A stretch of 63,424 nucleotides of DNA, the filler included, from Reticulomyxa filosa (lineage: Eukaryota > Protista > Foraminifera), in assembly GCA_000512085.1 (NCBI GenBank). It is 17 parts of 17 records of this genome, joined end to end, with 100 filler letters (N's around TTAATTAATTAA, not from the genome) between each part and the next. Parts side by side here need not be neighbours in the genome. Positions count along the whole stretch, not along the records: positions 42,931 to 45,272 come from ASPP01026273.1; 16 more parts are not named here. One strand, written 5' to 3'. Under the pieces are notes generated by a model. It did no database searches. It was not told where the DNA came from and was given only the letters and a program-made list of their open reading frames with translations. Below are positions 35-45,272 of the stretch, piece after piece. Position numbers and translations under genes: made by a program. The stretch's first letter is position 1, and every line of letters starts with the position of its first letter.

Positions 35-63
35 AAACTTTTTTAAAAAATAAAAATAAAAAG

Positions 64-1649
64 GTATGCCATCAAACGCAAGAGGAAATGGAAGCGTCAC
101 GAAAAACTTTTCGAACAGACAATCCCGTCCCCTCGCCGTACCGTAATCGCTCGATAGAGGAAAATCTGAACCTGTTTGAACTGATGCGCAAAGGGTACTT
201 TGCTGAAGGCGAGGCCTGCCTGCGCATGAAAGGGGACTATTGCAGCAATAATCCCAACATGTGGGATCATGTTGCCTATCGCATCATCTACAAACCGCAT
301 CCCCATGTCGGCGATAAGTGGTGCATTTATCCGACCTATGATTACACTCATTGCATTATCGATTCCTTGGAATGGGTCACCGCTTCGTGCTGCACCTTGG
401 AATTTGAAAATCGTCGTGAGTCTTACTTTTGGCTTTTGGACGTCCTGCAACTCTACAAGCCTGTCGTTTGGGAATACTCACGTCTTAATTTGACCTACAA
501 TGTATTGAGCAAACGAAAATTGCTAAAATTGGTTCAAGGTATTATTTATATACACATATTATATGTGCATATATAAATATATATTATATTCAAATTGTCA
601 ATGTGCTGTTACATATGCATACTGTCTTTTTCAATCGTAGGCGGCTATGTGCGAGGATGGGATGATCCTCGAATGCTAACCATCAACGGACTTCGAAGAC
701 GAGGATATACCGCGGAAATTTTGCGATACTTTTGCGACAAAATCGGAGTAACACGCAAAAATAACTTTATTAGTCCGAAATTGTTGGAGGCGTGTGCTCG
801 TGAGTTGCTGAATGAACAATCCCCAAGAGCATTTGGCGTGCTTTCACCTTTGAAAATCACCTTAACCAATTTTAACAAATCTGAACTGATCGAGTGTCCT
901 GATTTTCCTCAAAAAAAAGATACTACCAAACACTCTGTACCCTTCGAACGCGTGATCTATATTGATTCCTCTGATTTCAGAGAACATGCTGATCAAGTTT
1001 ATATATGCATATACATATATACACGTTGTTACACAAAACTTATTCAATAATTGTATTCTTAGAAATTCTATGGATTGGCTCCAGGCCGAACGGTGAGATT
1101 GAAATATGCATATAATATAACGTGCAAAAAAGTATAAAAGACAACAAAGGAAATGTAGTTGAATTGGAGTGTGAATACGATCCAGCCAGCAGACATGATC
1201 TAAAAGGTGTAAAACAAGGACACTTGTCTTGGGTATCAAATGGAGTTAGTGTGGAATTCCGATTATATTCACACTTATTCCGAACTGAATTCCCTGAGTC
1301 AGACAACTTCTTGAACGAATTAGAGTTTAGTTTCAAAAAAAAAAACTATCTGATGTTGAGTGTCAACGAGTGTGGTTGTGTTGTTGATAACTTTCAACAG
1401 TGGAGATTCTGAAATTATTACACATGGCTATGTGGATCAATCAGTGGTCAAATCAAAACATGAAAGATTTCAATTTGAAAGAGTTGGATTCTTTGTTCGA
1501 GACAATATTGACTGCAAAGACAACAAACCAGGTATTTTGTTTGTTTATCTCACTAGAAATAAAAGCAAATGTTTTTTTTTGGACATTTTATAGTATTCAA
1601 CCGAATTGTGCCATTGAAAGAATCTTCTGAGAAGCGCAGTTTGGCCTAA
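64..1649 (+). CDS. QARS: Glutaminyl-tRNA synthetase, 3' part (5' truncated, spliced)
   Basis: Exons ~64-538, 641-996, 1063-1324, 1401-1531, 1594-1649 with GT..AG introns. Motifs [21 protein letters not shown] (KMSKS equivalent), [21 protein letters not shown]. One-base deficit at ~1126-1134. Confidence 0.95.
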
Positions 1650-1943
1650 TCCAAAAATCTTTCAGTTTGCAAATGCAAAAAGTCAATTCTTTTTCAAAAA
1701 AACAAAATTTGGGAGTCCATAATTTACTATTCGTCTTTGAATTGACTTAAGAATTATTTTCTTTTTGAGAAAAACTTTGTTTTTGAAACCCAGATCAAGT
1801 GATGTATTAAAAGAAAATAATAAAAAATTTTCATTACATTTTTTTTTCTATTCCTGGTTGAAGAGAATCAGCAAGTCTAGCATGAGGACAATCCGGATAG
1901 TAGAATGCACTCAAAGGCAAGTACACTTCTAAACACTGCCATT

Positions 1944-2480
1944 TCACCTATAACAATTCAGAGTACTTTGTAACCATTTGTCCTTTTTTAAATTCCAATT
2001 TAGCTTAACTGATTCTTGGGTTGGCAAACCAAACCATTGAACTTTGCAAATTGTTGAATTCCACTTGACTGGTTCACCAACGTATCCGATGAAGTGTTTT
2101 GCTTTACCTTCAGCCAAGTCAGGATTGACGCGAACTAAAATACGCCCATCTTTCTGTAATACACAAATATATATGTATGTGTATATGTATATAGCGATAC
2201 AGGCGGATGTAATATAGAAAGCAATATAGAGATGTTGAAACTGAACTTGCACATCCCACTCTTTGATTTTGCCGCCAACGTACTCAACATAAGCCTCTTC
2301 GGAAGTAAAGTCTTTTCGAGTTTTCAATCGAGCCAATTTGGGTCGAATTTCGTCAATTCTTTTGGTGGTCTCTTGAACGTCATGTTGAATTTGTTTTTCA
2401 AATATTTCCAAACGTTGCGACAGAGTTTGAATGTGGTCATGCATTTGTTGATTCATTTGAGATAAGTTGTCAGCAGTGGA
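1944..2480 (-). CDS. Hypothetical coiled-coil protein, 3' part
   Basis: Open frame with heptad-like N-terminal part. Probable in-frame intron 2154-2251 (GTGCAA...TTACAG). No family recognised. Confidence 0.5.
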   Translation of the reverse strand, partial: STADNLSQMNQQMHDHIQTLSQRLEIFEKQIQHDVQETTKRIDEIRPKLARLKTRKDFTSEEAYVEYVGGKIKEWDVQVQFQHLYIAFYITSACIAIYIYTYIYICVLQKDGRILVRVNPDLAEGKAKHFIGYVGEPVKWNSTICKVQWFGLPTQESVKLNWNLKKDKWLQSTLNCYR

Positions 2481-2579
2481 TTGATCTGTGATATCCGCCT
2501 TTTGATTTTTTTTTCAATTAAAAAAAAAAAAAAAAGAAACGAAATGAAAGCAATAATGCGACCCCTTCAAAAAGAACAA

Positions 2580-2679
2580 NNNNNNNNNNNNNNNNNNNNN
2601 NNNNNNNNNNNNNNNNNNNNNNNTTAATTAATTAANNNNNNNNNNNNNNNNNNNNNNNNNNNNNNNNNNNNNNNNNNNN
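2580..2679. other. Artificial contig-joining linker N44-TTAATTAATTAA-N44 (first of 16)
   Basis: Identical 100-nt spacer with stops in all six frames. Also at 14941-15040, 20180-20279, 23044-23143, 26511-26610, 27747-27846, 33498-33597, 36324-36423, 40457-40556, 41578-41677, 42831-42930, 45273-45372, 53926-54025, 56975-57074, 58157-58256, 60485-60584. Confidence 0.99.
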
Positions 2680-2722
<43 letters not shown>

Positions 2723-2764
2723 GCGCAAGCCAAAACAAAAACAAACGCGTATAAATGGAAATAG

Positions 2765-4417
2765 GTATTGGACAAATTCATCCGACAAAATCCGGACCAC
2801 TGGATTTTGGTGACGGATGAACTGGGCTACAATATGAGTGGATTTATGATCTGTGCCTACTTGGTCGAATGCCACGACTTGTGTGTAGATGACGCATTGT
2901 ACTTCTTCAGCGAAGCACAAAAGCCGGGTTTGTTTGACATATTGTTAGTCAACCTGCTTCGAGAGAGATATTGTTCCGAAGAAGAACGGCAAGAAATGGA
3001 ACAATTGTCGTCGTGGCCCAAGCAATTAGCAAAGCCGAATTGGTACCACGGGAACGGAGCAACAACGACAACGACGACAATGGCTCCTTCTACACTTGAC
3101 GATGAAGACTCTTGTGTTGACAATGACGATGACGTTCCACCCTTATCCAAACCCAATTCCACTATTGGGGACAAACCTTTGGAGCCCATGCCAACAGGCC
3201 GAAAACGAAATTTGGTGACTGCTCGAAACAGTGATGTGATGAAAGACACCACCATTACTCCTTCTCATGACCAATTGATTACTGATGTATCCCTTCCTTC
3301 TTCTTCTTCCTCCTCTTTTTCGAATGTTAGTTCATTTGGCAAGTCGAGTGCATTTGATGAGGACGACATTGAAGATCATGAAAGTACTTCACGTGCCCCG
3401 CCTTCACTTGGAAGCGCTTCCACCAATAACAGCGCATTTGACGACGGGGATGACGTAATGATCGAGGAACCCACATTGTCGTCTTCTCACTCCAACGACA
3501 ACCAAGACAAACCCAAACCCGACAATATGAAACTCGGTGGTGGGGATAGTGGACACAGAACCACTGTCTGTGAAATGCCTTTGCCCTTAAAGGAAGCTCA
3601 TCCCTATCTGCAAATGGTTGACACTGCCAAAGACATTACACGCTTGACCACATTTGCATTGCAATTGAGCAAGAAGATGGACTATTTTCAGAGCATTCAC
3701 AACAGACCATTGACCATTAATGCAAACACTTTGATGAATGTTGCAACCACTCATCGCATTACGTGGCTGTCACGGGGTATCGCTTTTGGCTCATGATCAT
3801 CAAAGAAGGGGTCTTTTTTATCGATCCTTTGTACGTCAAGTCAACCATGCTCGGTGGAGTCTATCATGTCCCCAATTGCGTGTTTCTGGGCAAGGCATCG
3901 CTTCCTGTTGATGGCACACTTTTGTGCGGAGAGTTGATCGTCGACAAAGTCAGTCCAAACCAATCCCATCCCAGGTTCTTAATCACCGATGCATTGGCTT
4001 GTCAGAGTACTTGTTTAGAAAAGTTTGCTCATGATGCTCGGCTTAAAATGGTTGAGGTATGCTGCATTTTCTTTCTCTTTCCTTGTTGAGACAAATGTCA
4101 TTTTTGATTTTATACAGAACGAGATTATGCGCCCTTCAAAGGACTCATTAAGAGGACGTTATGCCTTTTTTGTTTGTTTGTTTTTTTTTGAAACACGAGT
4201 AGACAATTAACAAAATATATAATTTGCAATGCCTCTACCTTCATAATACATTAGATGCACTGCACTTTCGCGTCAAAGACATGTATGGGGTGAAAGAAGG
4301 TGTCTGTGAAAAACTGACAAAAATGATCAAAACCAGTTGACACATGAGTGTGATGGCCTAGGATTATTTCCTGTCAAACCACCGTTTGGCCAAAGACTGT
4401 TGAGAATTGCACTGTAG
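2765..4417 (+). CDS. mRNA capping enzyme (RNA triphosphatase + guanylyltransferase) homologue, catalytically degenerate, 5' truncated
   Basis: WILVTDELGYNMSGFMICAYLVE..QKPGL matches the RNGTT triphosphatase segment [55 protein letters not shown], FRVKD and HECDGL match the GTase motif series (I, III, IIIa, IV). Two introns and two one-base deficits (~3774-3777, ~4329-4332). Confidence 0.8.
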
Positions 4418-5906
4418 TAAGGTCGCAATTTTAATTTTTTTTCGTTGCATCAAATAATTTTGTGAGTTTCTAAGTCATGAACAACAAAATGACACAACAA
4501 TGTTTTCTCATACTGAACACTAAGCATTTTTTTTTACCTAATCCATACTCGAAGTTAAAAATGTTTTGGCAATTTTTTACGCAAGTGGTAAATTGTAAAA
4601 TGGTCCTTATTTCCGGTAGATGGCTCCTTTTTCCTGTTTTCTGTTTACTTTCAATGCCAGATTATTTTTTAGTCACTTAATGAGCTGTTTAAATGGTTAC
4701 GATCCCTAAGATGGAACGAAATAATACCCAGCTATGGATGATAACAAACGAACAAAAAAAACTGAGTGAAAGACAACGTAGCAACAGATGAGTTGTTGGT
4801 ATCGATCTTGTATACTACAAAAATGCCCGAGAAATTAACAAAGCATGACTAAAAGACGCAATAAAAAGAACAAGGGTTAATTGGTTACAAAAACGAACCC
4901 CCAATATTTATCCAAAGTATCAATATCCAAACGCTTGATTAATAAAATTCAGCGCTTAAACAACGGTTTATATCTGGTGATAACATTTGTTTTATTGATG
5001 GCAACTTTTTTTAAAACTTACTTTTTACAAATTTTATTTATGTAGTTCTTGCACGTTATCCAAATAAAAAATGAACGGCAAAGAAAAGAACAACTGTGCG
5101 TGGCCGAATTTTTATTTTCTCAATTTTTTTGATTTTTGTTTATTTTTTAATCCAATCAAAATCACAAAATTGAATGAGAACGGAAAGTAGTGTACAACAA
5201 ATATATATGGAAACTCTAATTTCATAGGCGAAAAATGAAGTGCATAAAACATTTTGTTGCTTTGATATTTATGCTAGCGTGTTGTTGCGTTAATTGATAT
5301 TCGTTTTTTGTTAAGATTGATTTTGCGTCGTGATAATACAACATCGCAAATTCTTCTTTTTACTAACCATTTGTTTTTGTTACGTATTATTTGTGTTGCT
5401 GCGTTCACACGAATTGATAAAACGATATTGATTTAATCAAGTTGCATGCTCTATGATTGAAACTCTTTAAAATTTCGAAAACACTTTGAAAGTATGTTGG
5501 AATTTTTGTGATATTCCAAGTAATTAGGTCTTTTGTTTCTTTTACATTTCGTTGCGATTTTTCTTCACCAATGTGCACTGTTCATTTTCCTTGATCACTA
5601 ATTGTTTTCGCTACCAACTTGGAAATTGGAATACCATTTCTTCATGCAAGTGAACACGTATTAATATTTTTTACACTGTTTGCTTCTTTGCTCAAGTGCT
5701 CATTTTTTTAAATCAGCCAATCAAATCTCTACGATAGATTAAATAAAACAAAACTAATTTGTCAAATTATTGTGTCATTGAAGTAAACGATAATGTTCTT
5801 TTTTTATGTGTACGTTAAATTTATTTGCAAAAGAAAATCTAGTAACTTCCCCACATTTTCCCTTTCGGTTGACGCAATATAAAAAAAGAAACGAGTAAAA
5901 GCAAAT

Positions 5907-7305
5907 TTAATGGGACAACAAGAATTCAATAAGCTGTGAAATATTTGCTGTCCTATACCATTGCTTTTGAGAAATGTCACTCGTTCGCAAAAACCAGTTA
6001 TTTGTGATAACTGGCACCACCGAGTGTGTGGACGGCAAAATTTCACTCCTAAGAATCTTATCTACGTTATCTGTGAGAAAATTCCAAGGCCCAATATCAG
6101 GAAGAAATACTCTCCCATAAAGATTTGCCAGTGCGGCATGTAAACAAAAAGTTGACGTACCACAGACTAAATTTGGTGCATACATCATTAATGCGAAATC
6201 ATTGACGATATCATTGTTTACCAATTCAAAATACAATTGATTCGAGCGGTTTACATAGTGCTCACGTAATTTATTTTGAAAGGCGCTGACTAGTCGATAA
6301 CAATTTGCCATATTTGCATTTTCTACTTTTCTATGAATCCCTTTTGCAGAAATCTGAGAGATAATGTATACGTTTTGCTGCTTGGCACTGCTATTTACCT
6401 GTTCAAAAATACGATCAAACACGTAAATGTAATACTTCAGCGTCATCAGGTGATATAGTTCATGTCCAAATAAAATATCTCCACATCTGAAATGAATTAC
6501 AATATCGTCGCTGTATTGATGTTGTTTTTTTTAGGTCATTTACCAATAATCAAAATTAGCGGTCTCCCTTTCTTTCTCTTTGCACTTGAGTTATTTTTTC
6601 CAAGTTTTTCCAAAAGGGGTACCAACAAAGAAAGGAAATGAACCAGAAAAAGGCGCAAGCAGAAAAAGGACCGAAAAAAAAGAATACAGGAAAAGGGATC
6701 GAAAAAAAAAAGAACCTCAATAAATTTTGATAGAAAGGTGTAGCCGCAGGATCTTTTTGAAAATAATGCACAATGGCCTCATGGGTGTTTTTATGCAAGA
6801 TTGGGAGAAAGTGTCGATTATAAAATGCAAAGAGCTGCGAAAAGGAATGAGGATATCGCATTTTAGGTGTTAAGTCCAAAGCAATTTCAATACTATTCAA
6901 TTTCTTTTTAAACTCTAGCATTTCTTTGCTAGAGGAGTTTATGCTGGTTCCATTAGACGGTGAGTATTGGACTTTTCTTGGTAGATATGGCAAAAATGTT
7001 TCTCGGTAGTGTCCGATTAAATTAACCCATAAAGATTTTGATAATTCAAAGTGTTGCTCTTTCCAATAAAAAATAGAGCGTCCATACCAATACATAGACA
7101 AACGATTGCCAAAACCTGTCGTCTTATGCATTGGCACCATTTTGAATATGCTACTCATCTTATTCTGATTCTTTGGAATAAGTGGAATGTTCATCACATA
7201 ATCGTTTTGTTGTACATAAGACGGTTGTGTAGAAAGAATCAAAATTGTCATCAAACCAATACTTACAAACACCAAAATGAAAGGCTGGAAGATTGCCCGT
7301 AGCAT
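5907..7305 (-). CDS. Type II membrane fucosyltransferase-like glycosyltransferase (GT11/GT23-like, GT-B)
   Basis: N-terminal TM helix and GFGNRL. After removing intron 6511-6715: DIVIHFRCGD (cf. xHxRRGD) and DFALMMYAPNLVCGTSTF (cf. D..L....I...STF). Confidence 0.75.
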
Positions 7306-7803: not shown

Positions 7804-10800
7804 TTAACTTTTTTCTTCATCAGTTTTATCAGAACTGTTTGCAAGTTGATTCGATTTACTCTTTAAAAGATTACTATTTTTATCTTTTGCGTTTTCTTCT
7901 TCATACAATAACCAAATCTCTTTGACAACCTCTAGTTTTCGCATAAGTGCTCTAAGTGGAGCTATAGATGTGGCCTGCCAATTCTCAAGGCCGCTGATAC
8001 ACGCTCGTTGTTGGTATGTATCCAAAATCGAGAACCACTCACTCGTGGGTGATTCGATACATTTGATAACAGCACTCAAAGGCATTCCAGAGCCAAGCAG
8101 ATCAGCACAAATTTCAATCAACTCTGGAGCCCTTGCGAGCCAATCAAACAACGAATACTTCATTAAATCTTTGTTTGATTGCGGTTGTTCTAATCCTTCA
8201 AAGTCGTATTCTAGGATCAATTCTCTTGTTCTAAATTATTATCATTATTATTTTTGATTGGTATAAATACGTAATACACATAGCAACAACAACAAAACTT
8301 TTGTCTTAATAAAGAGCAAGCATTCATTCCACTGATGGGAACCAATCGATGAACGCGACACTTGAGAGGACATTTGAAATCAAAGCTTTCAATTTCTTTG
8401 CAAATATTAACGCGACAGAGCAGCAATATGCGCACACTTCTTAATTCCGTCAAAAGGCGGTCCATGACATTCCAAAACCGTTGCAATTGTTCTTGAGAGA
8501 AAGTCAAGTGATCAAAGATGAACAACGTGACACCCTGGCATTTTTCTCGGATTTGAGAAAGAATGGCCTTTTCCCCATGGAACAAAAGACAATTCTCCGC
8601 GACTCAACTTTGCCCGTTTCTGAGTCTTGCCAAACCTCTTTGGGAAAATCGTTGGGCATAATTTTGAACCACGTTTGTGCTTGTTTGAAAATTTCCAGCG
8701 GCAGCTTGGCTTTCAAAGTTAGATGATGATTCTTATGTTCGCGAAACAAAATGAATCGACTTTGGTCTTTGTCATCTACGTATACAATGACTTTGGGTGT
8801 GTCCGAGTGTTGTTCCTGACAGATTTGCTGATGAATATTCTGCGGATAATCGACCATCTCTTTGGTTTGGCTGTCACGTGATTGAAACTTCCCCGAGTCA
8901 ATTTCCATGCAATCTGCCATGAACTCAAGCAATCCGTCCGGATCCGATTGCAACTTGCTCAGATCGATCCACCACACCCCGCCTGGGAATAATGGAATGT
9001 ACCACGGACGAGTGAAAAACTTGGCCACGCTTTTCGCAACTGTGGTGCATCCCACGAATGGGAGACCGCTCAACACCGTCACGTCGTGCATTTGCCGCGT
9101 TTGCGGGTGCAGCAGTTGAACCAAGATGTTAATGTCCTCATACCTCCCCAGCACTTTCCGCCCGTCCTCGCGCCAGCCGTGCGCGCAGTTCGATGGAAAC
9201 CTGTACAGCAACACCTGCAGTTGCTTCTTTTGCGTTTTCGTGCTTTCATCCGCCAACACTTGTTGCTTATGGTCGCTGCTTCCCAGCAATAGAAACTTTT
9301 TGCTGTGTTCATGCGGGATGTCGGGCTGGCAACAATCCATCTTTTTAAATCCCGTACACTGCTCCGAGTGATGCTGTTGACAGCAGCGAACAGTATTGCA
9401 ATAAGGACATACACATTCTTGTAGATGTCCCTCATGGCGGCAACAGCAATCAACTTTCCCTAGTAAGGTTATCCCTATTTTATTTTATTATTATTATTTT
9501 TAAACAATGAATTGTATAGTTGACAACATCATAACAAAATTTAAAAAAAATATCTTTTGTATAGAGTGCTTTAGATAAGTAGTCAAATAAATAACAATAA
9601 TAATAATAATGATAACAATAATAATAAAATACTACTGAACGTAACATTTAACCTGCTCGAGCATTTTTAAATGACTCCACAACTGTTTTTTTTTGCCCTA
9701 ACAAATTTTGATAAAAGTTGAGCGCAAATTCCATGGCGGTTTTATTATTAATTTGCACTAACGAGTGCACGGCCACCACATTGGGCACGCCCACTTCGAC
9801 GAATGCTTTTGCCACTTGTTCGCTGAAACACGTGGAGACGAATACCAACACCAGCTGCGACGACGTCTCTTCCAACGCTTGACGGATGACATTGGCGCTG
9901 ATCGTGTTCATCCCTCCCCAATGGTCTTGCACTTGCAACGTCTGCGCGTTGGAGCCATGACCACTGATGTGTAATATCTTGGCACCCCTTTGAATGCATG
10001 AAATCAACGACTGCTCTGTTAACACTCCAAAGAACACTCCCAGAGGCTGTTCGCATCGTCCAAACATTGTCTCCAATGAATGTCGCTCTTCTTCCAAGTC
10101 CAAGAACGCGTCACCCGCGTCGAGCGGACTCGAATGCAATACCGCTATGTCAAGTTGCTGCTTGAAAAACGACTCGTTCTTTGGTTGGTAAGCTTCCAAT
10201 AGGATATGTTCGAGCAATAGAAAATTGTCAAACACAAACAAATTAACAAAAATAAAATATATATATGTATATACATACATATATTATAATATACATATGT
10301 GTACATATATGTATATTATAATATATGTATGTATATTATAATATATGTATGTATATACATATATATGTTTATTTATTTTTGTTTGTTTGTGTTATGTAAT
10401 GAGATTGGTGTTGAATGAGAAACGAAACTTAGCAATTGCTCGCGACTCTTGTCGCTGTACTGTTCGTAGTTGTCAGTTTTGACGTCAGTGACAGGCTGCG
10501 ATTTTGTAACATGCAGTTTGGGCAATGGAACAGGCTTGATTTCGTGGTTGTCACTAAAGTATTCGCGAAAGGAAGGGTTGACAGGAGGCAACAGCGGAGC
10601 GAGATGAACACTGATGCGCGGATCTTTGGGGTAAGTGATGGAAGGGAGTGGGACATTTGGGATTTTGGGAGAAGTTGGTGGCGAAAAGTCAAAGGGCAAG
10701 CTTGGCACATGTTTCAAGTCAATGTCACTTTCGATTGACATTTGTTCGAACAAGTCTTTTTGTTCAGGTAAGTCCTCTGTTTTTTCAGACAATGGAAGAG

Positions 10801-11054
10801 AAGGGACAGGAGGAAGAGGAGGAGGAAACACTGCAATGCGCGGTTTGGACAACCGCGGATAATTGTCGTGTGACGGATAGCCGACGAGTTTCTCCAGCGA
10901 CGGTTCTTCCTGTAGGATATCCATTAATATGGGAATGAGTTTCGTTTGTCATTGGCCTCTTCAACCTTGCCTGCTTTGCACAGTCGCCAAATTACGACGG
11001 ATAGTATTTGCGATGGTATCGACATCTCACTGCAGACAATTTGATACATTTCAC

Positions 11055-11091
<37 letters not shown>

Positions 11092-11280
11092 CAAAGAATA
11101 ATCCAATTTCGAACAAGCTGTTTGTTTTGAAATGCAAATTAAAAAAAACAAAAACAACAACTTAACTTAAATTTTTCAGCTTTGTATGCCTTCATTCCCA
11201 TTCCGTCCAAGAACAATCTGCAATTGTTCCTCACTAAATGGTCTTGGTCTTCACACAATTCATCATTTGTAACTTTGATC
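7804..11280 (-). CDS. CHAT (caspase-HetF) peptidase + Cys/His-rich insert + degenerate STAND/NB-ARC-like P-loop protein (spliced)
   Basis: Pro-rich exon ~10430-10924. CHAT exon ~9653-10213 with SSPL, ILHISGHG, LVFVSTC, AFVEVGVPNVVAV, FALNFY. P-loop GLPFVGCT, FPGGVWWIDL, Walker-B-like LFIFDH, RILLLCR. 5' end uncertain; one-base deficits near 10942 and 8585. Confidence 0.8.
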
Positions 11281-11889
11281 TCATATCCGAATCAAATCAA
11301 ACAAATACAACACATACACACTCTCATGTACTTACGTGTTGCAGAGAGGTTATATGCTCGTTCGATTAATCCCCACCGTGCGCAATTTTCTTGCATCGTC
11401 TCTGTTGTGTTGTTCAATTGACATCATTACCACATTCGCAACATTAATTCAAATATACATACATGTTATATACAACTTCAAATAGAACCTCAGACACGCG
11501 CAGGCAAGAAGACAGGAGAAGAAAGAGAAAGATGGAAAACAAGAGAAGGAAAAGGGGAAAAAAAGTTGAAACAGCAAAAAAAAAGATAACTAATGTCTAA
11601 CGAAGATATTTTTGCCAACAATGAAAATATGTTGGCAATAATACTGACCGCACTATCTTCAATGTTTCCACATTTGCACAGAGACTCTAAGTTCTGTCGT
11701 TTTTTGCCAAAATTTCTGTAAAATTTCTATGTTTTTTTTTTTTTGTTCATTTTTTTTTTTTTTTTTTAACATCATTGTTAACATTTTTTAAAAAAAAAAA
11801 CTGGTAAGATTATATTTCGTAATGAATACAACATGCTCAAGGTCGTGAAAAAGAGAGAACACAAACTAGGTAGGGGACCGAAACGTACC

Positions 11890-12440
11890 TTTCTTTTCTT
11901 TAAAATCGTCCTTCCATTGAAAACATACTTGATTCAATACAACCAAACATGCTTCCCATATCTCTATTTCCTATGTTACATTCCAAAAAAAAACAATCTT
12001 TCTTTTTGTTGTACCTGAAAAACTTTTCAAAATACAAAAGGAAGAAATAAAACCTGAGACTTTTCCAGAAACTGAAGCGTTACAATTAAAATATCAGCAC
12101 GAAGCAATGTCTCATGCAATTGCCTCTCTGATGACACCAATGCCAATGTTTGCAACGATCTGAGTTGCAAACCTATATCTCTTTCTTTACTTACAAATGC
12201 TATTATTCGAGGAATATGCGATTTGAATGCCAACATTTCTGTGCACATTTCCATTATCACTTTCGTTTTTTCCAACACAACAACAAGCTATACATCCCCA
12301 ATATACAAAGTACATCTTTGATCAACTGTGGTTCAGTTGTGAGCAGTACCACATCTGTGCAATCTTTAGATAATGATGGCATGCCTCAGCACCTGTCATT
12401 GCCTCGGCTGCACTTAAGAGGTTGAATTCTTTGATGGACA
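11890..12440 (-). pseudogene. Degraded ARM-repeat (importin-alpha-like) fragment
   Basis: HIPRIIAFVSKERDIGLQLRSLQTLALVSS...QKEDC resembles ARM helices. Flanked by stops and frameshifts. Confidence 0.3.
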
Positions 12441-12835
12441 TGTCTTATTGAAAGGGAAATGATTATATATGCTTTTTTCCCTCCCCCTTGTCAATCTTCT
12501 CTTAAGTTTTTTTACCAGAAGTACTTTTTATAATTCTATCACAAAAGAATTTTTTCAGTGTTTTTCAAGGGATGCATATGTTATACGGTAAAAAGTTTCA
12601 CTCAATTTCTTAGTTAGTCGTTAGAATATAAATAGAGTTTTCTTTTATTTGACGAATTTTACTATCATACCCATGACCTAGCGGAAGCATCAAAGCACTT
12701 AGAGACAAAGAAACAATATGAACGTGCGTTTTTTCATGCAAAAATTTATTGAAATATGCAGTACGATGGGGAAACAATTTCAAATATAAATCCACAGAAA
12801 TAACAAAAAAAACTTAGATAATTTGTATTAAAAGG

Positions 12836-13873
12836 TTATTGATATTGTTTTTGTGGGTTTAAGATCATTTGTTGATATTGAGCTTGCTTTTGCAAGTCAG
12901 TTTGTGTGAATTTTGGGAAAGGTTTTCCTTTGGGATATTGTAACCAGTTATCGACCGGATAATGGTACTGTCCGTCAACACAATGCATCATGAAGGCGTG
13001 CCTCGGATTTGTAGAGGTGTTTTGTTCGCTCCAGTGAATGACCTTGCCGTGTAAAATGATCAAGTCTCCACTTTTACATTCGACAGGGACTCCTTGACTT
13101 TTGTCGATACTGTTCAAGCTGATATTCTTGTCCCCTGCGGATTGATATTCGATCATTTGTGTCTGTTCGTCGGAAATGCGGACAAATCGTTGAAACAAAG
13201 GATACGTCTGATGTGACTTTGGTAAAACATAAATACAGCCATTTTCCACATTTGTCTCATCGACAGCAAGCCAAAAACCATAACAAGACATTGGTTCCGT
13301 AAATAAAAACGTAGAATCTTGATGGGGGGACACTTCACCTCCAATTCCTTTTTGTTTGAAAATGTACATGCTTTGCAATAGTATTGGATTCACCATACCC
13401 ACGTCATAACACAATGGCCCGACGTATCCGTACACATAACCTTTGAACAGATCGTCCAATGTATGCAGTGAATGTCCGACTTTGTTAATTCCCAACTCTT
13501 TGTTTGCATTTACTTCCTGCGCTTTCTCTTCCCAAAAGTAACATATCTTATCGCCACTGTTCAAAAAATACGTATCTTTGTATTGCTTCTCCGTTCGATG
13601 GCTTGAAAATACTGATTGCGATGTGGTTGAGTCCCATTCGTTTATTCTTTCCACTATCCTCTTTCTCAACCTTTTCGATACTACATCTGGCACAAAGTTT
13701 TCAATTTTTAAATATCCATTTGTACGCAGATGATCCTTTTCTGCTTCTGTCAGACGGGGGTTTGCTCGTGCTCCCGAAAACGACCAACTTGTCGTCCAAT
13801 ACAACATATCTGCCCATGATTTTAATCTTGGTGTTGTTCTTTTTGCCAAACTGTTATTCAATATTCCAAACAT
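12836..13873 (-). CDS. PHYHD1: Phytanoyl-CoA dioxygenase domain protein (PHYHD1-like, Fe/2OG)
   Basis: Intact intronless 345 aa ORF: YFLNSGDKICYFWEE, INKVGHSLH, QSMYIFKQKGIGGEVSPHQDSTFL (HxD), ENGC, HWSEQNTS..RHA, DNWLQ. Confidence 0.93.
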   Translation of the reverse strand: MFGILNNSLAKRTTPRLKSWADMLYWTTSWSFSGARANPRLTEAEKDHLRTNGYLKIENFVPDVVSKRLRKRIVERINEWDSTTSQSVFSSHRTEKQYKDTYFLNSGDKICYFWEEKAQEVNANKELGINKVGHSLHTLDDLFKGYVYGYVGPLCYDVGMVNPILLQSMYIFKQKGIGGEVSPHQDSTFLFTEPMSCYGFWLAVDETNVENGCIYVLPKSHQTYPLFQRFVRISDEQTQMIEYQSAGDKNISLNSIDKSQGVPVECKSGDLIILHGKVIHWSEQNTSTNPRHAFMMHCVDGQYHYPVDNWLQYPKGKPFPKFTQTDLQKQAQYQQMILNPQKQYQ

Positions 13874-16252
13874 TCCGAAATTATGCTCCTTGGATTAACT
13901 TTAAGTTTTATATACTTCTTTTCCTACCCCTTTTACTTTTTACCTTTATAAGACCAAAAAAATTACGATTTTTTATTATTACTGTTGTACTTTTGTTTAT
14001 CAGTTTTATGAGATTTACTGGCCATTATTTTAACAATAGATTTTTAAATTCTTCTGTGGAAAATTACAAAAGTCTTGAAAAAATTGTGTTAAATTCCAAT
14101 TTGCACGTACTAAGTTTTCTAATTTTAGTTTTAATCGACATTTGAATATTTCTGTCATTCTTGAAAAAAATACAGTATTAGGTAAAAATTTTTGAACTTT
14201 TTTTTTTTGAAAAATGCTTTACTCGTTATCTCTTCGTAATTCTATTTTATGATTGAAATTTCTTTTGGTTTTGCAAATTGATTGGTATATTCCTTGTTAT
14301 TGTTTATTAAACTCCTAAATTCCATGGAAACAAGTAATAAGAACAATTTGTACTCATTTTTAATGGTATGATAAGAGTTAGCATACATTTTCATGAAAGT
14401 TTCCACAAATGACTATTTCATCTTTGTATGCCACAAATTTATATCGGAAAAGCTACGTTGTCAAAGGGTATGATATTATTCTGATTTTTCTTCAAGAGAG
14501 CGAATGAAAAATGAGTTTTTTTGAATTTCATTTATATTCTTGATTAGAAAAAAGCTTGTCCTTTATCAAATACATTCACTTCATTTGAATGTGCTCTGAG
14601 TTAGTTGTTACCACAACAATCTACTTTTGATTTTGTTTCAACATTTTTTGTCATTGATTGCTTTCTTTAAGGCTTTCATCCAAGCTGTATCTCTCTTCAA
14701 TAAAACAATTTTCACTTTCACCTTTGAAAACCAAACACTTTTTTTAAAGTAAAGATAGTTTCTTGCCAATTCGCGATAACAAATATTGAATTAGCAATTG
14801 TAAAACCTCTGGATCATCGGGAAATTTACTCGTACACTGTCCTTGTATCTGAGAATGTACATATTCAAAGCATGTATTTGGCGTGTCAGTTCAATATCCA
14901 AATACAGTAGGTTGCAAAGAAAACTGAACGCCTAAAACGANNNNNNNNNNNNNNNNNNNNNNNNNNNNNNNNNNNNNNNNNNNNTTAATTAATTAANNNN
15001 NNNNNNNNNNNNNNNNNNNNNNNNNNNNNNNNNNNNNNNNTTTATCTATTTATCCTAATTGTTTTCAATGTGCGATGTGTGTATTTTTGCGGTTCAAATA
15101 AAACACAGTTTCTATTTGCAGCTTCAGTAGATAACCACTTTTCTTAACTCTTACTTTCCAAAGAAATTCCCATTCGCAAGTGCAAAGTCTAACAAAATAT
15201 TTACATCTCTTGGAACTGTAAACCAAACAACTAACACAGAGATAAGTGTCTGTGCAATTTCAACTTTGTACAAAATTTTTGTTATCTTTGGTGAGATATT
15301 TCAAAAAAAAAAAAGTATTTTTCGAAAAATTTAAAATAAGGTTGCTTGTGCCGCTGACAACCTAGAAATAACAATAATTTTGATTTTCAGTTGATTGTGG
15401 ATACAAATGGATTTGGCTGTTTAAAAGTCCAAGAATTAAAAGTGTATTGATAAATTAAACAATTATCAAAAGTGTGACAAAAAAAGATCGTATAAAAAAT
15501 ACGCACATTGGCCTGAGAGCCATTGTTAGTGCTCATGGCCATGCTTGTGAGCATTTGGATCAAAGATATTATTGGTGATTCAAAGATTTTTTGTGATGGT
15601 CGTGCACATCATCAATATTATATAATTCATAAAACGACAGATGCTATCACCCTTTTCTTTTTCGTTTGTTGCAAATCAACACATCTCCGAGGTTAAATTT
15701 CGTTACTCGTTGACACTTAAGCAAAGCTATCAATATGTGAACAGTAGCCCCTCATATGCCTCGGAACACCTAAACGCTCACTATTTCTTTCACTCACTTG
15801 TGTCACTTATTTTTTAATAATTTTCGTTTTGCCTTGAAATAATCTGCATTTGTTACAGCAAAAATTCTTCGCATAAACCATATTTTCTTGTTGAGTCTCT
15901 TAGGCGTTCGAGTCCAGACTAAGATCACTTCATGAGTTTACCATTAGAGGCAGCACGAGAAAAAAAGGCATTGTTTTTATTGTAAATACACTTTGTTTAC
16001 TTAATCAAACACCAAATTGAGTGTATTATATTTTTCTTTTTGTTGACTCCTTCTTTTGCTTGGCAGAGTGACCTGGACGAGTAGCAGAAAAATAAAAAAT
16101 TAAAAAGCATATTTTTTTGTTTTTCAGTATTTTCTGTATCAAATTATTTGCCAAAAGAAATATTGTCATAGTTAAACAGTTTTGTACTTTTGCTGAAAAG
16201 AGTTTTCTGGTATATTGTTAAAAACTCTGTGGTGAGACTGACGCTGCTGAGA

Positions 16253-42830: not shown

Positions 42831-43156
42831 NNNNNNNNNNNNNNNNNNNNNNNNNNNNNNNNNNNNNNNNNNNNTTAATTAATTAANNNNNNNNNNNNNN
42901 NNNNNNNNNNNNNNNNNNNNNNNNNNNNNNTTGATAAAACAATGACGTTTGAAATTTTTTCAGTCATTTTTTTCTACCTTGTTTAATTAGATAAGTAATG
43001 GTTTGATAATTTGTTGATTATTGAGTCACTTTGCACAATTGCAAAGAAAATATTCCTCCTCAATTGTTGGTGTCACAAGACTATGAGGAGGAAGTCAACG
43101 TTTCACCCTCCACAACCCTTCAAAAAAATTTATTCCCTGACCAAAACAACAACGAC

Positions 43157-45272
43157 ATGGTATCAAGCAAGCATCCAAAGACAAGCATTAGTAACGCTCT
43201 TGGCGTCACCCACAAGGCGGCCGACAACAGTCGTGATAGTTCCGTTGCCCCAAGCCACGGGGCGCAAACAACAGCTTCCAGTAGACTACGAGTTGAAAAT
43301 GGTAATAGTCCATCGCTGACCGTTGCACAGCCACGCAATTTCGGAAATGGTATCATTTCGGGCCCCCACACACCACCCCGAACTTCTCCCAATTCGCATA
43401 CCAATACGTTTGAAAAAGTTCCTCCGCAAGTAGCATCCTTCGACGCCATTCAGATATACTGTCGCATCAAGCCGCTTTCTATTTTCGACACCAAACAAAG
43501 CTATGTAAAAGTTGAGGAAAATAAAATAGTAACATCCATCGCACACACACCTAGTGGAGGCAGTTCGTACGCGTTCAATGATGTGTTCCTTCCAATCTCG
43601 TCCAACGTGCATGTAAGCAAGAAGACAATCGCACCGCTGTGCGAAAAAGCAATCTGGGTGTACAACGCGCTTTTCTTCGTTTATGGGCAAACAGGAACAG
43701 GCAAATCTTTCTCAATTCATGGAAACCCGGAAATATCTGAAAGCCAACCCAATGCCACCCTCCCATTTGCCATTAACTATATATTATCCAACACGGCTGC
43801 AGCGGGAATCATGCTTTCGTTATCAGCAGTCGAAATTTACGATACCAACCTCACCAGAACGCAATACTTCGACCTTCTACTCCCAACCAATCTCGAGGCC
43901 TCCACGTGGGAAAGTAAAATTGCCTCGTCCAATCCGGATCTCTCCAATTTAACGCCACACATTGTGGCCAAAGATTCCCCCATACAAGACATTGTGAAAT
44001 GAGTAAGAGACTCTTCACACATAGCAGCAGCGACGGGGGTTAACCAAGATTCCTCGCGTGGCCACACCATATACATACTCACATTGACCCAATCATTCAG
44101 TAAAGATGATACCAATACCAATCAATTGATAAGTAAGTTGATTATCGTTGATTTGGCCAGCAGCGAAGGCGAGAATTCCTTTCCATTCAATTTTCATTCG
44201 ACACCATCCCAAAAGAACAACATCCAGAAAATGAAAATGGAGGCCACTTGTATTAACAATACGCTCACCCAATTGCAGATGACATTCCATGAGTTGACAT
44301 GCAAAGGGAAATTGGGGCCCACTCGAGGAACCGGTTTGAGAAAATTGTTATATCCATATATTAACAAATTGACACTAATCGCGATCATGTACACAATATC
44401 CCCAAGCATTCAAGACGCCAGAGCCACCGACGCCACGTTGAAATTCGCAACAACAGCAGGCAGCATTCAATTGACCCCCCAGAGAACCAGCATCCATTCC
44501 AACCAAAAGCCCACCGTCATGAGCAATTCGCATATACATGCACCCTCACATATCCAAAGCGATCACATTGACACACATCAACGCACTGCGGAAATTGTAT
44601 CAATTCAAAGTGAACCTGTTATTGCACCATTACCGATTCAAGCAGCGGCAGCAGATACCATTCCAACCGCTCCTGCAACAGGGTACTCGACAAACATCGA
44701 AGACATCGATGAAGATGCTGTACCAACGGCCCAACACTCCGTCCCGCAAGCCCCCAGTTCATTCATTTGCCCCGTTCCGGCATGCGCAATGCATTTCACA
44801 GCAGAATGCACGTTGCATAACCACGTCAACAGGCATCTGGACAGTCACGAATCCGTCGCAATCACACAATCCTATTTTATCACGTACAACCGGAAAATTT
44901 GTACATACTGTAGGACAATATCGCATACCAGTCGCATACACAACGGCATGCACAGAGACTGCACTCTCCTACATAACAAACAGCGTACCGAAGCAGATCC
45001 ACCAACAAATCCCAAAACCCAACATCACGAGCAAATCCAGTTTGAAAACGTCGACGTCGACGTCCTTCACCGAGGCCGCACACCCTCTCGAGATCAATTA
45101 TCATCTGGCACTCAAAACGACAGCCAACCGCAATTTGTTGAAGAATCCAAATACCAGCAAGACGATCATGCAATTCCCGTGCCGTTGGAGGCGTCGCACT
45201 GGTCATGGCCATCACCGGCCGCTATTGCAACAACGCAGGCGAAGATTATTCCCAGAATCCCTCGCGCATTTC
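43157..45272 (+). mobile_element. Divergent kinesin motor domain fused in frame to C2H2/CCHC zinc fingers resembling a CRE-clade non-LTR retrotransposon N-terminus (one in-frame TGA; 3' truncated)
   Basis: Kinesin: IYCRIKP, YAFNDVF, YGQTGTGKS, VEIY, NQDSSRGH, IVDLASSE, INNTL, TISPS, TLKFA (~43445-44466). ORFs 43031 and 44084 share a frame, split only by TGA 44000-44002. Then CPVPAC..LHNHVNRH..CTYC..HRDC and WPSPAAI..IIPRIP. Confidence 0.7.

Follow-up and report, generated by a model that had tools for sequence, protein, structure and literature searches.

A single reading frame in the foraminiferan Reticulomyxa filosa joins a kinesin motor to zinc fingers of a kind that precede reverse transcriptases, raising the question of whether a transposable element has come to encode its own cytoskeletal motor. 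The window, the whole stretch of DNA analysed, comprises 63,424 nucleotides in 17 joined parts of assembly GCA_000512085.1, and the frame lies on the part at positions 42931-45272, which is one whole contig of 2342 bp (ASPP01026273.1). From an ATG at 43157, the single frame encodes, in order, a leader, a kinesin motor, a Pro/Ala/Ser linker, a C2H2 zinc finger, a second Cys/His motif, and a W-x-P...AKIIPRIPRAF segment, and it remains open where the contig ends. The original prediction, made from this DNA alone, was that a CRE-type retrotransposon had captured a kinesin. The analysis reported here makes it likely that the frame is the 5' part of one copy (hereafter the focal copy) of a family of R2-like retrotransposons without long terminal repeats (non-LTR) that encode a restriction-like endonuclease (RLE) and carry a kinesin motor. 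The single long open reading frame (ORF) of the family runs from the leader through the kinesin, the linker, the C2H2 and second Cys/His motifs, and a helical region marked W-P/AKII-R-(I/V)-P to a reverse transcriptase (RT) with YHDD, a CCHC motif and a PD-(D/E)xK endonuclease.

The coding frame is distinguished by its composition and by its scarcity of stop codons. Stops occupy 8 of its 780 codons along the contig, seven of them inside the AT-rich flank at 42931-43156, while the five other frames contain 25-37 stops. This stop depletion and the Pfam matches in the frame at 43157-45271 are far beyond chance. The GC content of the ORF is 42-53%, as against 31.5% in the upstream flank. Each motif quoted in the original prediction was recovered in the translation of the window where it had been placed, and the frame is indeed single and GC-rich from 43157 to 45271. 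It is not uninterrupted, however: an in-frame TGA at 44000-44002, overlooked at the time, falls within the motor, downstream of the P-loop and upstream of switch I. The closest database protein to the contig, and its sole close match, is the NCBI model RFI_30086 (P0001, 578 aa), in which one invented intron bypasses this TGA and thereby removes switch I. A second invented intron in the same model removes CTYC...HRDC, and the model ends at ...HAIP. Upstream of the motor, the flank at 42931-43156 has no similarity to other family copies in a copy-to-copy comparison, and the leader at 43157-43438 has no Pfam match and cannot be aligned with the leaders of other copies.

Relatives with kinesin, fingers and reverse transcriptase

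Evidence for a retroelement comes from relatives that extend further than the focal copy. The kinesin-finger-RT order recurs on three other R. filosa contigs (L003, L005 and L006) and in three copies on a 16-kb metagenome contig (L001), where it takes the form kinesin-finger-RT(-RLE); the junction is collinear in all of them and is thus not a single-copy arrangement. L005 (ASPP01025516) has one uninterrupted frame of 1831 codons ending in TAA, which encodes a leader, a kinesin (aa 307-614 by Pfam), a linker, the fingers, the W-P region, an RVT_1 domain (aa 1178-1394, with YHDD), and then C..C..H..C, RHD, RPGD and D-x-G-x-TH. On L003 (ASPP01029371), kinesin, finger and RT share an open frame that spans at least 1379 codons and runs off the contig. 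The kinesin is better preserved (86 bits) in L006 (ASPP01002760), which is annotated as "kinesin family member 4, partial" and continues with fingers, RT and RLE, with an A12 run at the contig end, 305 nt after its TGA stop. On L001, copy B is 5'-truncated inside the motor, abuts unrelated sequence, and ends in a T-rich 3' untranslated region (UTR) and A17. The hallmarks of retrotransposition (multiple copies, A12 and A17 tails, and the 5'-truncated copy B) are shown for the family, not for the focal copy.

Downstream RT and RLE, whose absence would have counted against the original prediction, are found after the finger module in every homologue long enough to include them (L002, L004, L005, L006, L001A and L001B), and L003 agrees as far as its contig reaches. 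As had been foreseen, the RT lies outside the window, the contig edge cutting the frame before the RT region. We infer that the RT of the focal copy is present beyond the contig. At least nine R. filosa proteins or contigs belong to the family, and two R. filosa proteins carry both PF00225 and PF00078 in precomputed Pfam lists.

The tail of the frame leads to the same family. A HMMER search with the last 174 residues covered 1.8 billion proteins, one representative for each 50%-identity cluster of about 15 billion, and returned seven proteins at E <= 0.001 besides the focal copy's own. Four of the seven are RT proteins or belong to kinesin-RT contigs: P0029, a 638-aa metagenome protein with a kinesin motor and then the finger (E 1.3e-9); P0034 (R. 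filosa RFI_31151), with the finger and then Pfam RVT_1; and P0033 (R. filosa RFI_32957) and P0032 (R. filosa RFI_25032), both with the finger. P0031 is a 168-aa fragment that carries the finger. P0030 and P0035 were rejected as unrelated, matching the generic finger or the spacer alone. Pairwise alignments are collinear through DID-x-DAVP, the C2H2 finger, the second motif and the W-P motif, and that of P0029 begins at switch I, crosses the linker and reaches the final residue of the focal copy (30% identity over 446 columns, E 8e-48). A word-indexed protein search with the tail gave no match beyond the copy's own protein, and a narrow scan of metagenomes with a finger/W-P alignment gave no relatives.

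Both Cys and both zinc-binding His of the C2H2 finger are kept in every row that spans it in alignment A1, where the L005 row begins after the finger, and the ligands are invariant in the seven-row alignment A5. Across seven family members, R, C, C, M and H of the second Cys/His motif and W, A, R and P of the W-P motif are invariant. A profile of the C2H2 finger matches the fingers of AEBP2, YY1 and TFIIIA in the PDB, and alone it is an ordinary C2H2 finger. Although the first finger is generic in this sense, the whole module of fingers and W-P motif matches mainly RT or kinesin-RT proteins, which bears out the proposal that the fingers are tied to a retroelement and not to ordinary host proteins. 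The focal copy covers the first 24 residues of the W-P/AKII-R-(I/V)-P region and ends about 240 codons before the RT start in relatives. Past this cut, the relatives continue with AR..FA...NN..W.KW...LW.P.R and then the RT. The linker between motor and fingers (S 12, I 12, A 12, P 10 and T 9 among its residues) has no coiled-coil character by composition, in agreement with the Pro/Ala linker without a stalk that was originally described. The features of the focal copy are collected in Table 1.

Table 1. Features of the kinesin-finger frame and its upstream flank, in window coordinates
Feature	Position	Strand	Basis or remark
AT-rich upstream flank or 5' untranslated region, 226 bp	42931..43156		31.5% GC; seven of eight frame stops
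N-terminal leader, 94 aa, Ser/Thr/Pro-rich	43157..43438	+	Translation
Kinesin motor, first half, with P-loop GQTGTGKS (43685-43708)	43439..43999	+	PF00225 55.2 bits, PF16796 40.5 bits, alignment
In-frame TGA stop inside motor	44000..44002	+	Translation; spliced around in NCBI model
Kinesin motor, second half	44003..44479	+	PF00225 64.3 bits, alignment with other kinesins
Switch I, NQDSSRGH	44042-44065	+	Alignment
Switch II, DLASSE	44150-44167	+	Alignment
Clade signature, RGTGLRKLL	44324-44350	+	Alignment
Neck-like end, SIQLTP	within 44003..44479, motor end	+	
Disordered linker, 96 aa	44480..44767	+	Composition
Conserved acidic motif, DIDEDAVP	44702-44725, in linker	+	DID-x-DA(V/M)P also in P0034, P0029 and P0033
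Classical C2H2 zinc finger, C-x4-C-x12-H-x3-H (CPVPAC...HNHVNRH)	44768..44836	+	Alignment
Second Cys/His motif, C-x2-C-x13-H-x2-C (CTYC...HRDC)	44900..44962	+	Part of retroelement N-terminal module
Variable spacer	44963..45199	+	Longer than in any relative; gapped in all relatives in A1
W-x-P...AKIIPRIPRAF, start of conserved pre-RT domain	45200..45271	+	Cut by contig edge

Affinity with R2 and other endonuclease-bearing elements

The element type was assigned through matches to solved proteins. When a family profile from the RT to the C terminus is compared with the PDB, R2 retrotransposon proteins are the best matches (9nl3, E 1.6e-28; also 9dou and 8gh6), in two stretches that cover the RT fingers and palm and the CCHC with the RLE. 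LINE-1 ORF2p follows R2 and matches in the RT only. A profile is needed to see this relationship, as a single-sequence PDB search with the RT-RLE part found no match. In the C-terminal alignment A4, the CCHC, the RH dyad of RH(D/N), the R, P and D of RP-x-D, D-x-G-x-TH, a K, and G-x-W-H are invariant, and RPGD is present in four of five rows. The GGWH motif is conserved, and the family's C-terminal motifs align to the R2 RLE. The CCHC, RH, PD-(D/E) and RG.W motifs are known from R2Bm, whose RH, PD and G-x-W motifs are present in this family (PMC4838377). The named references in this assignment are solved R2 proteins, and the "CRE clade" label of the original prediction stays a suggestion.

RLE-encoding non-LTR elements of the CRE, R2, R4, NeSL and HERO clades share a layout of N-terminal fingers, RT, and a C-terminal finger with RLE; they are typically site-specific, and the N terminus of some has further domains, among them a Ulp1-like protease and RNase H (PMC4640811). 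The family resembles R2 (R2Bm, R2Tg; 8gh6, 9dou and 9nl3) in its single ORF, N-terminal C2H2 finger or fingers, central RT, and C-terminal CCHC and PD-(D/E)xK RLE. Unlike this family, R2 has no kinesin or any other motor; further differences are the poly(A) tails found here and a single-sequence similarity to R2 below detection. No Myb domain was matched by Pfam in the L005, L006 and L003 ORFs at E <= 0.1. The flanks of L001-L006 have no match to ribosomal RNA (rRNA), so that the 28S rDNA insertion characteristic of R2 was not encountered. A scan of six family loci (43.9 kb) against Rfam at E <= 0.1 likewise gave no match, over flanks that are short and with the caveat that a foraminiferal spliced-leader RNA may not be modelled. 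An AlphaFold model of the stretch from finger to RT has a mean predicted local distance difference test score (pLDDT) of 55.8, and Foldseek found nothing for it in the PDB beyond a 32-residue C2H2 match.

Other selfish elements offer partial parallels. NeSL/Utopia elements also place an accessory enzymatic domain upstream of the RT or fingers in a single ORF (PMC4640811), but there the domain is a protease or nuclease and here it is a cytoskeletal motor, and no small nuclear RNA or spliced-leader gene appears in the family flanks. The CRE clade (CRE1, CRE2, SLACS and CZAR) shares the general finger-RT-CCHC-RLE layout (PMC4640811), whereas its spliced-leader target is not seen in the family flanks by Rfam. 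Closest in concept among the systems found is maize Ab10 with KINDR and TRKIN, where a selfish genetic element likewise provides the kinesin for its own movement on microtubules (PMC7462060); these are kinesin-14 genes carried by a drive haplotype and working on DNA knobs during meiosis, and not a domain of a retrotransposon polyprotein. An ESM Atlas search with the 1831-aa ORF returned RVT_1 clusters only (scores up to 0.82), none with kinesin. The original prediction knew of no kinesin-bearing retroelement, and none is described in the full-text literature searched, a search that did not extend to the genome paper of Glöckner et al. 2014. A kinesin-bearing RLE non-LTR retrotransposon thus appears unprecedented, none having been found.

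The kinesin and the competing explanations

The motor of the focal copy is recognisable from end to end. PF00225 matches on both sides of the TGA (profile positions 25-172 and 190-327 of 327), and both halves exceed its gathering score of 29.3, in keeping with the full motor originally described. GQTGTGKS conforms to the P-loop pattern GQT-x-x-GK(S/T), and NQDSSRGH was accepted under the switch I pattern N-x-x-SSRSH. Every kinesin of its clade in which switch I can still be recognised, whether free-standing or not, has the S-to-G change; in L003 and L005 the motif has been lost.

This clade emerged from the kinesin tree, whose construction had been proposed as a check. The element kinesins and four free-standing kinesins (P0002-P0005) group with 100% support, apart from 23 other kinesins, and have in common a switch I with SSRGH and a (R/Q)GTGLR-x-LL motif that replaces YRDSKLT. 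P0002-P0005, from marine and other metagenomes, carry these signatures but stand alone, as genes of 476-598 aa whose products have coiled-coil tails and a canonical DLAGSE. One of them, P0002, lies at L007:503-2050 on a TARA Oceans scaffold (GC content 30%), next to an unrelated gene for a Cys-rich membrane protein and with no RT nearby. The approximately unbiased test (p 0.13) does not reject one origin for the element kinesins. The pairs (L003, L005) and (L001A, L001B) recur in both the RT tree and the kinesin tree, and the in-frame order is kept across lineages whose kinesins are only 24-34% identical. Between L001 copies, the ratio of nonsynonymous to synonymous divergence (dN/dS) in the kinesin is 0.23/0.86 when A is compared with C and 0.37/1.47 when B is compared with A, or about 0.25-0.27, and that of the RT-RLE part is 0.15/1.11, or 0.14. 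Because the kinesin ratios are this low, selection acted on the motor while the lineages replicated.

A second R. filosa lineage bears on when the motor was acquired. In L002, finger, RT and RLE are encoded by an intact ORF of 1568 aa (the frame stays open for 1587 codons from the contig edge; locus 60-4766). In this sister lineage, which includes P0036 (model 1801 aa), the same fingers, RT and RLE are preceded not by a kinesin but by 540-770 aa that are unassigned and in part coiled-coil-like. Further searching placed P0036-P0038 in the kinesin-less group. The possibility of a hidden kinesin in the N termini of L002, P0034 and P0036 was rejected, as a hidden Markov model (HMM) of the family kinesin found nothing there. 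A metagenome scan with the RLE alignment found 48 distant relatives at 22-36% identity, and a six-frame HMM scan detected no kinesin in them, including those with 4-5 kb of upstream sequence, although most of these contigs are 1-3 kb long. Because these 48 relatives have no detected kinesin and the kinesin-less R. filosa group is one branch of a three-way polytomy in the RT tree, the motor appears to have been gained in or near the family and to be absent or lost in one branch.

Several observations weigh against the reading of the focal copy as part of a motor-carrying retroelement, or at least against a working one. The window contains neither RT nor RLE, as the contig ends first, and the focal copy is the most divergent member of the family, with 24-34% identity to any relative. 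This divergence also suggests that more family lineages may exist than the fragmented assembly shows. The coding sequence of its motor is interrupted by the in-frame TGA, and its switch II, DLASSE, departs from DLAGSE by a Gly-to-Ser change at the glycine that senses the gamma-phosphate; elsewhere, switch II is DCAGSE in L001B and DLAGSE in the free-standing relatives. Loss of this glycine, by what is generally known of P-loop motors, predicts impaired ATP hydrolysis in the focal copy. L003 and L005, the longest intact R. filosa ORFs, have no P-loop and yet remain open. In the sister lineage represented by L002, P0036 and P0038, no kinesin is detectable ahead of the finger, over stretches of as much as about 770 aa. 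Finally, L001 copies A (2821-5338) and C (13618-16081) are mosaic, with 61-84% identity over the 5' region and kinesin and 93-100% identity from A3757/C15157, a sharp boundary just after the motor. The mosaic indicates that the kinesin module may have been exchanged between lineages or that gene conversion took place between the inverted copies, but it could also be expected from repeated insertion next to different kinesin paralogues.

Reading the TGA as a sense codon was rejected; reassignment is unlikely because TGA ends the L006 ORF and is not used once among the 1831 codons of L005. The focal copy is probably defective. Given the premature TGA and the Gly-to-Ser change in switch II, it is most likely, and most simply read as, a decaying insertion, or else a copy with one assembly or sequencing error.

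Among explanations that dispense with a captured motor, the one that survives best, though it is improbable, is that the kinesin is the target. A site-specific RLE element would insert in frame just after the motor of a multi-copy host kinesin family, and the fusions would be read-through products. Such elements are indeed typically site-specific (PMC4640811), free-standing kinesins of the same clade exist (P0002-P0005, with L007 in an ordinary gene context), and the sharp rise in identity after the motor between L001 A and C is what insertion beside different kinesins would leave. L001 copy B, however, breaks off within the motor against unrelated sequence, the outcome expected of 5' truncation if the mobile unit contains the kinesin. 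The ORF is continuous from leader to RLE in L005 (1831 aa) and over at least 1379 aa in L003, both of which stay open even though their kinesins have lost the P-loop. The in-frame fusion has moreover persisted between kinesins as dissimilar as 24-34% identity, and the kinesin and RT trees have the same pairs. Nor did a search with RFI_30086 reveal a close kinesin paralogue: the best match is 25% identical, and no free-standing R. filosa paralogue appeared. The claim of a captured kinesin is largely upheld. The recurrent in-frame ORF in relatives, the truncation within the motor and purifying selection indicate that the motor is part of the element, while the mosaic copies A and C fit a host target as well.

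Only slightly less plausible is that the focal copy is a host gene, a kinesin with nothing more than an acquired or domesticated zinc-finger module and no RT downstream. Its frame starts with an ATG of its own and a short leader behind an AT-rich flank, it is very divergent from all RT-bearing relatives, and no RT lies in the window. Yet the W-P motif at the contig edge starts a domain that leads to an RT in every relative long enough, the contig runs out before the frame closes, and the in-frame TGA and DLASSE suggest decay and not a maintained gene. The wrong joining of a kinesin gene to the 5' end of a retroelement, conceivable in a short contig (2342 bp) from a repeat-rich genome, is very improbable, as the collinear junction of motor, linker with DID-x-DAVP and finger occurs in independent assemblies and contigs (L001, L003, L005 and L006), the frame is open across it, and the P0029 alignment crosses it.

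Possible roles of the motor and genomic setting

If the focal copy belongs to a motor-carrying RLE retrotransposon family, its life cycle would resemble that of R2. By analogy, the protein would bind its own RNA (cis-binding), its N-terminal fingers would bind target DNA, the RLE would nick the target, and the RT would copy the RNA at the nick by target-primed reverse transcription. The kinesin would tether the ribonucleoprotein to microtubules or move it along them, transport being a possibility in copies whose ATPase motifs are intact. Retroelements and viruses borrow host microtubule transport through adaptors or RNA signals, and an element that encodes its own motor would represent a different and direct solution to transport. 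The motor stands at the N terminus with a short neck-like I-x-x-x-P segment after it, an arrangement shared with plus-end-directed kinesins. Because the linker has no coiled-coil stalk, the motor would act as a monomer or as several copies on one RNA, and processive movement would require the latter.

The host provides a suitable setting, being famous for fast transport on microtubules across a huge network with many nuclei. Its cell is a giant syncytium, densely filled with microtubule arrays, in which organelles and nuclei are moved rapidly (PMC13371060), and this makes a role in microtubule transport plausible; in such a cell, transport along microtubules would help the ribonucleoprotein to reach nuclei. 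That the kinesin has some microtubule-related role in the life cycle of the element is a tentative proposal, at best evenly balanced. A fuller version is rather more doubtful, namely that an autonomous lineage has long carried a working motor as its first domain and hauls or anchors its own ribonucleoprotein to reach nuclei, possibly chromosome ends. The loss of the P-loop argues that, at least in the L003/L005 branch, the domain would contribute at most microtubule binding and not ATP-driven stepping; ATP-driven motility may not be essential, since both copies lost the P-loop and keep the ORF open. The kinesin itself would be dispensable for the basic mechanism, because the sister lineage has no detectable kinesin.

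If the reading holds, this would be the first known case of a cytoskeletal motor encoded by a transposable element, offering a natural experiment on the limits of retrotransposition in syncytia and a compact fusion of motor and nucleic-acid enzyme for study. Part of the reported kinesin richness of Reticulomyxa would then be retroelement cargo. At least four R. filosa gene models annotated as "kinesin" or hypothetical (RFI_30086, RFI_32957, RFI_29435 and "kinesin family member 4") are retroelement ORFs, and kinesin counts and invented-intron models in R. filosa therefore need revision.

The surroundings of the longer relatives include further features. At the start of L003 (1-340) lies a telomere-type repeat, (CCCTAAG)n, with five overlapping 14-mer matches, followed by about 250 bp of AT-rich sequence and then the element, whose 5' end faces the repeat; the repeat is absent from the other 54 loci. 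Telomeric head-to-tail arrays of non-LTR elements are formed by GilM and GilT in Giardia and by HeT-A and TART in Drosophila. The family resembles these in that the poly(A) of an L001 unit abuts the next unit and the telomere-type repeat caps the 5' side of the element on L003, but such repeats occur on one contig only and none is present in the focal contig. Directly upstream of the kinesin-RT ORF, at L003:315-3644, is a Ser/Thr/Pro-rich open frame of 1109 codons with no Pfam match, whose TGA overlaps the ATG of the kinesin-RT ORF (ATGA, 3641-3644). It could be an ORF1 with coupled reinitiation or part of one giant frameshifted ORF.

On L001, an A17 run is followed by the same AT-rich sequence of about 200 nt three times (10624-10835, 12933-13154 and 5916-6137), after the 3' UTR of copy B and before the full-length copies A and C. 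These repeats, which match no Rfam family, suggest that the units may form head-to-tail arrays or share a specific target. Just upstream of the motor, copies A (5052-5414, minus strand) and C (13537-13938, plus strand) have a Cys-rich open frame with no significant Pfam match and no counterpart in the focal copy. Between two of the repeats lies a 2.1-kb unit (L001:10836-12932) with an unrelated acidic/basic ORF of 494 aa (10970-12454) that has no Pfam match. This unit shares its terminal T-rich 3' UTR and poly(A) with the kinesin-RT copies and may be a non-autonomous partner element.

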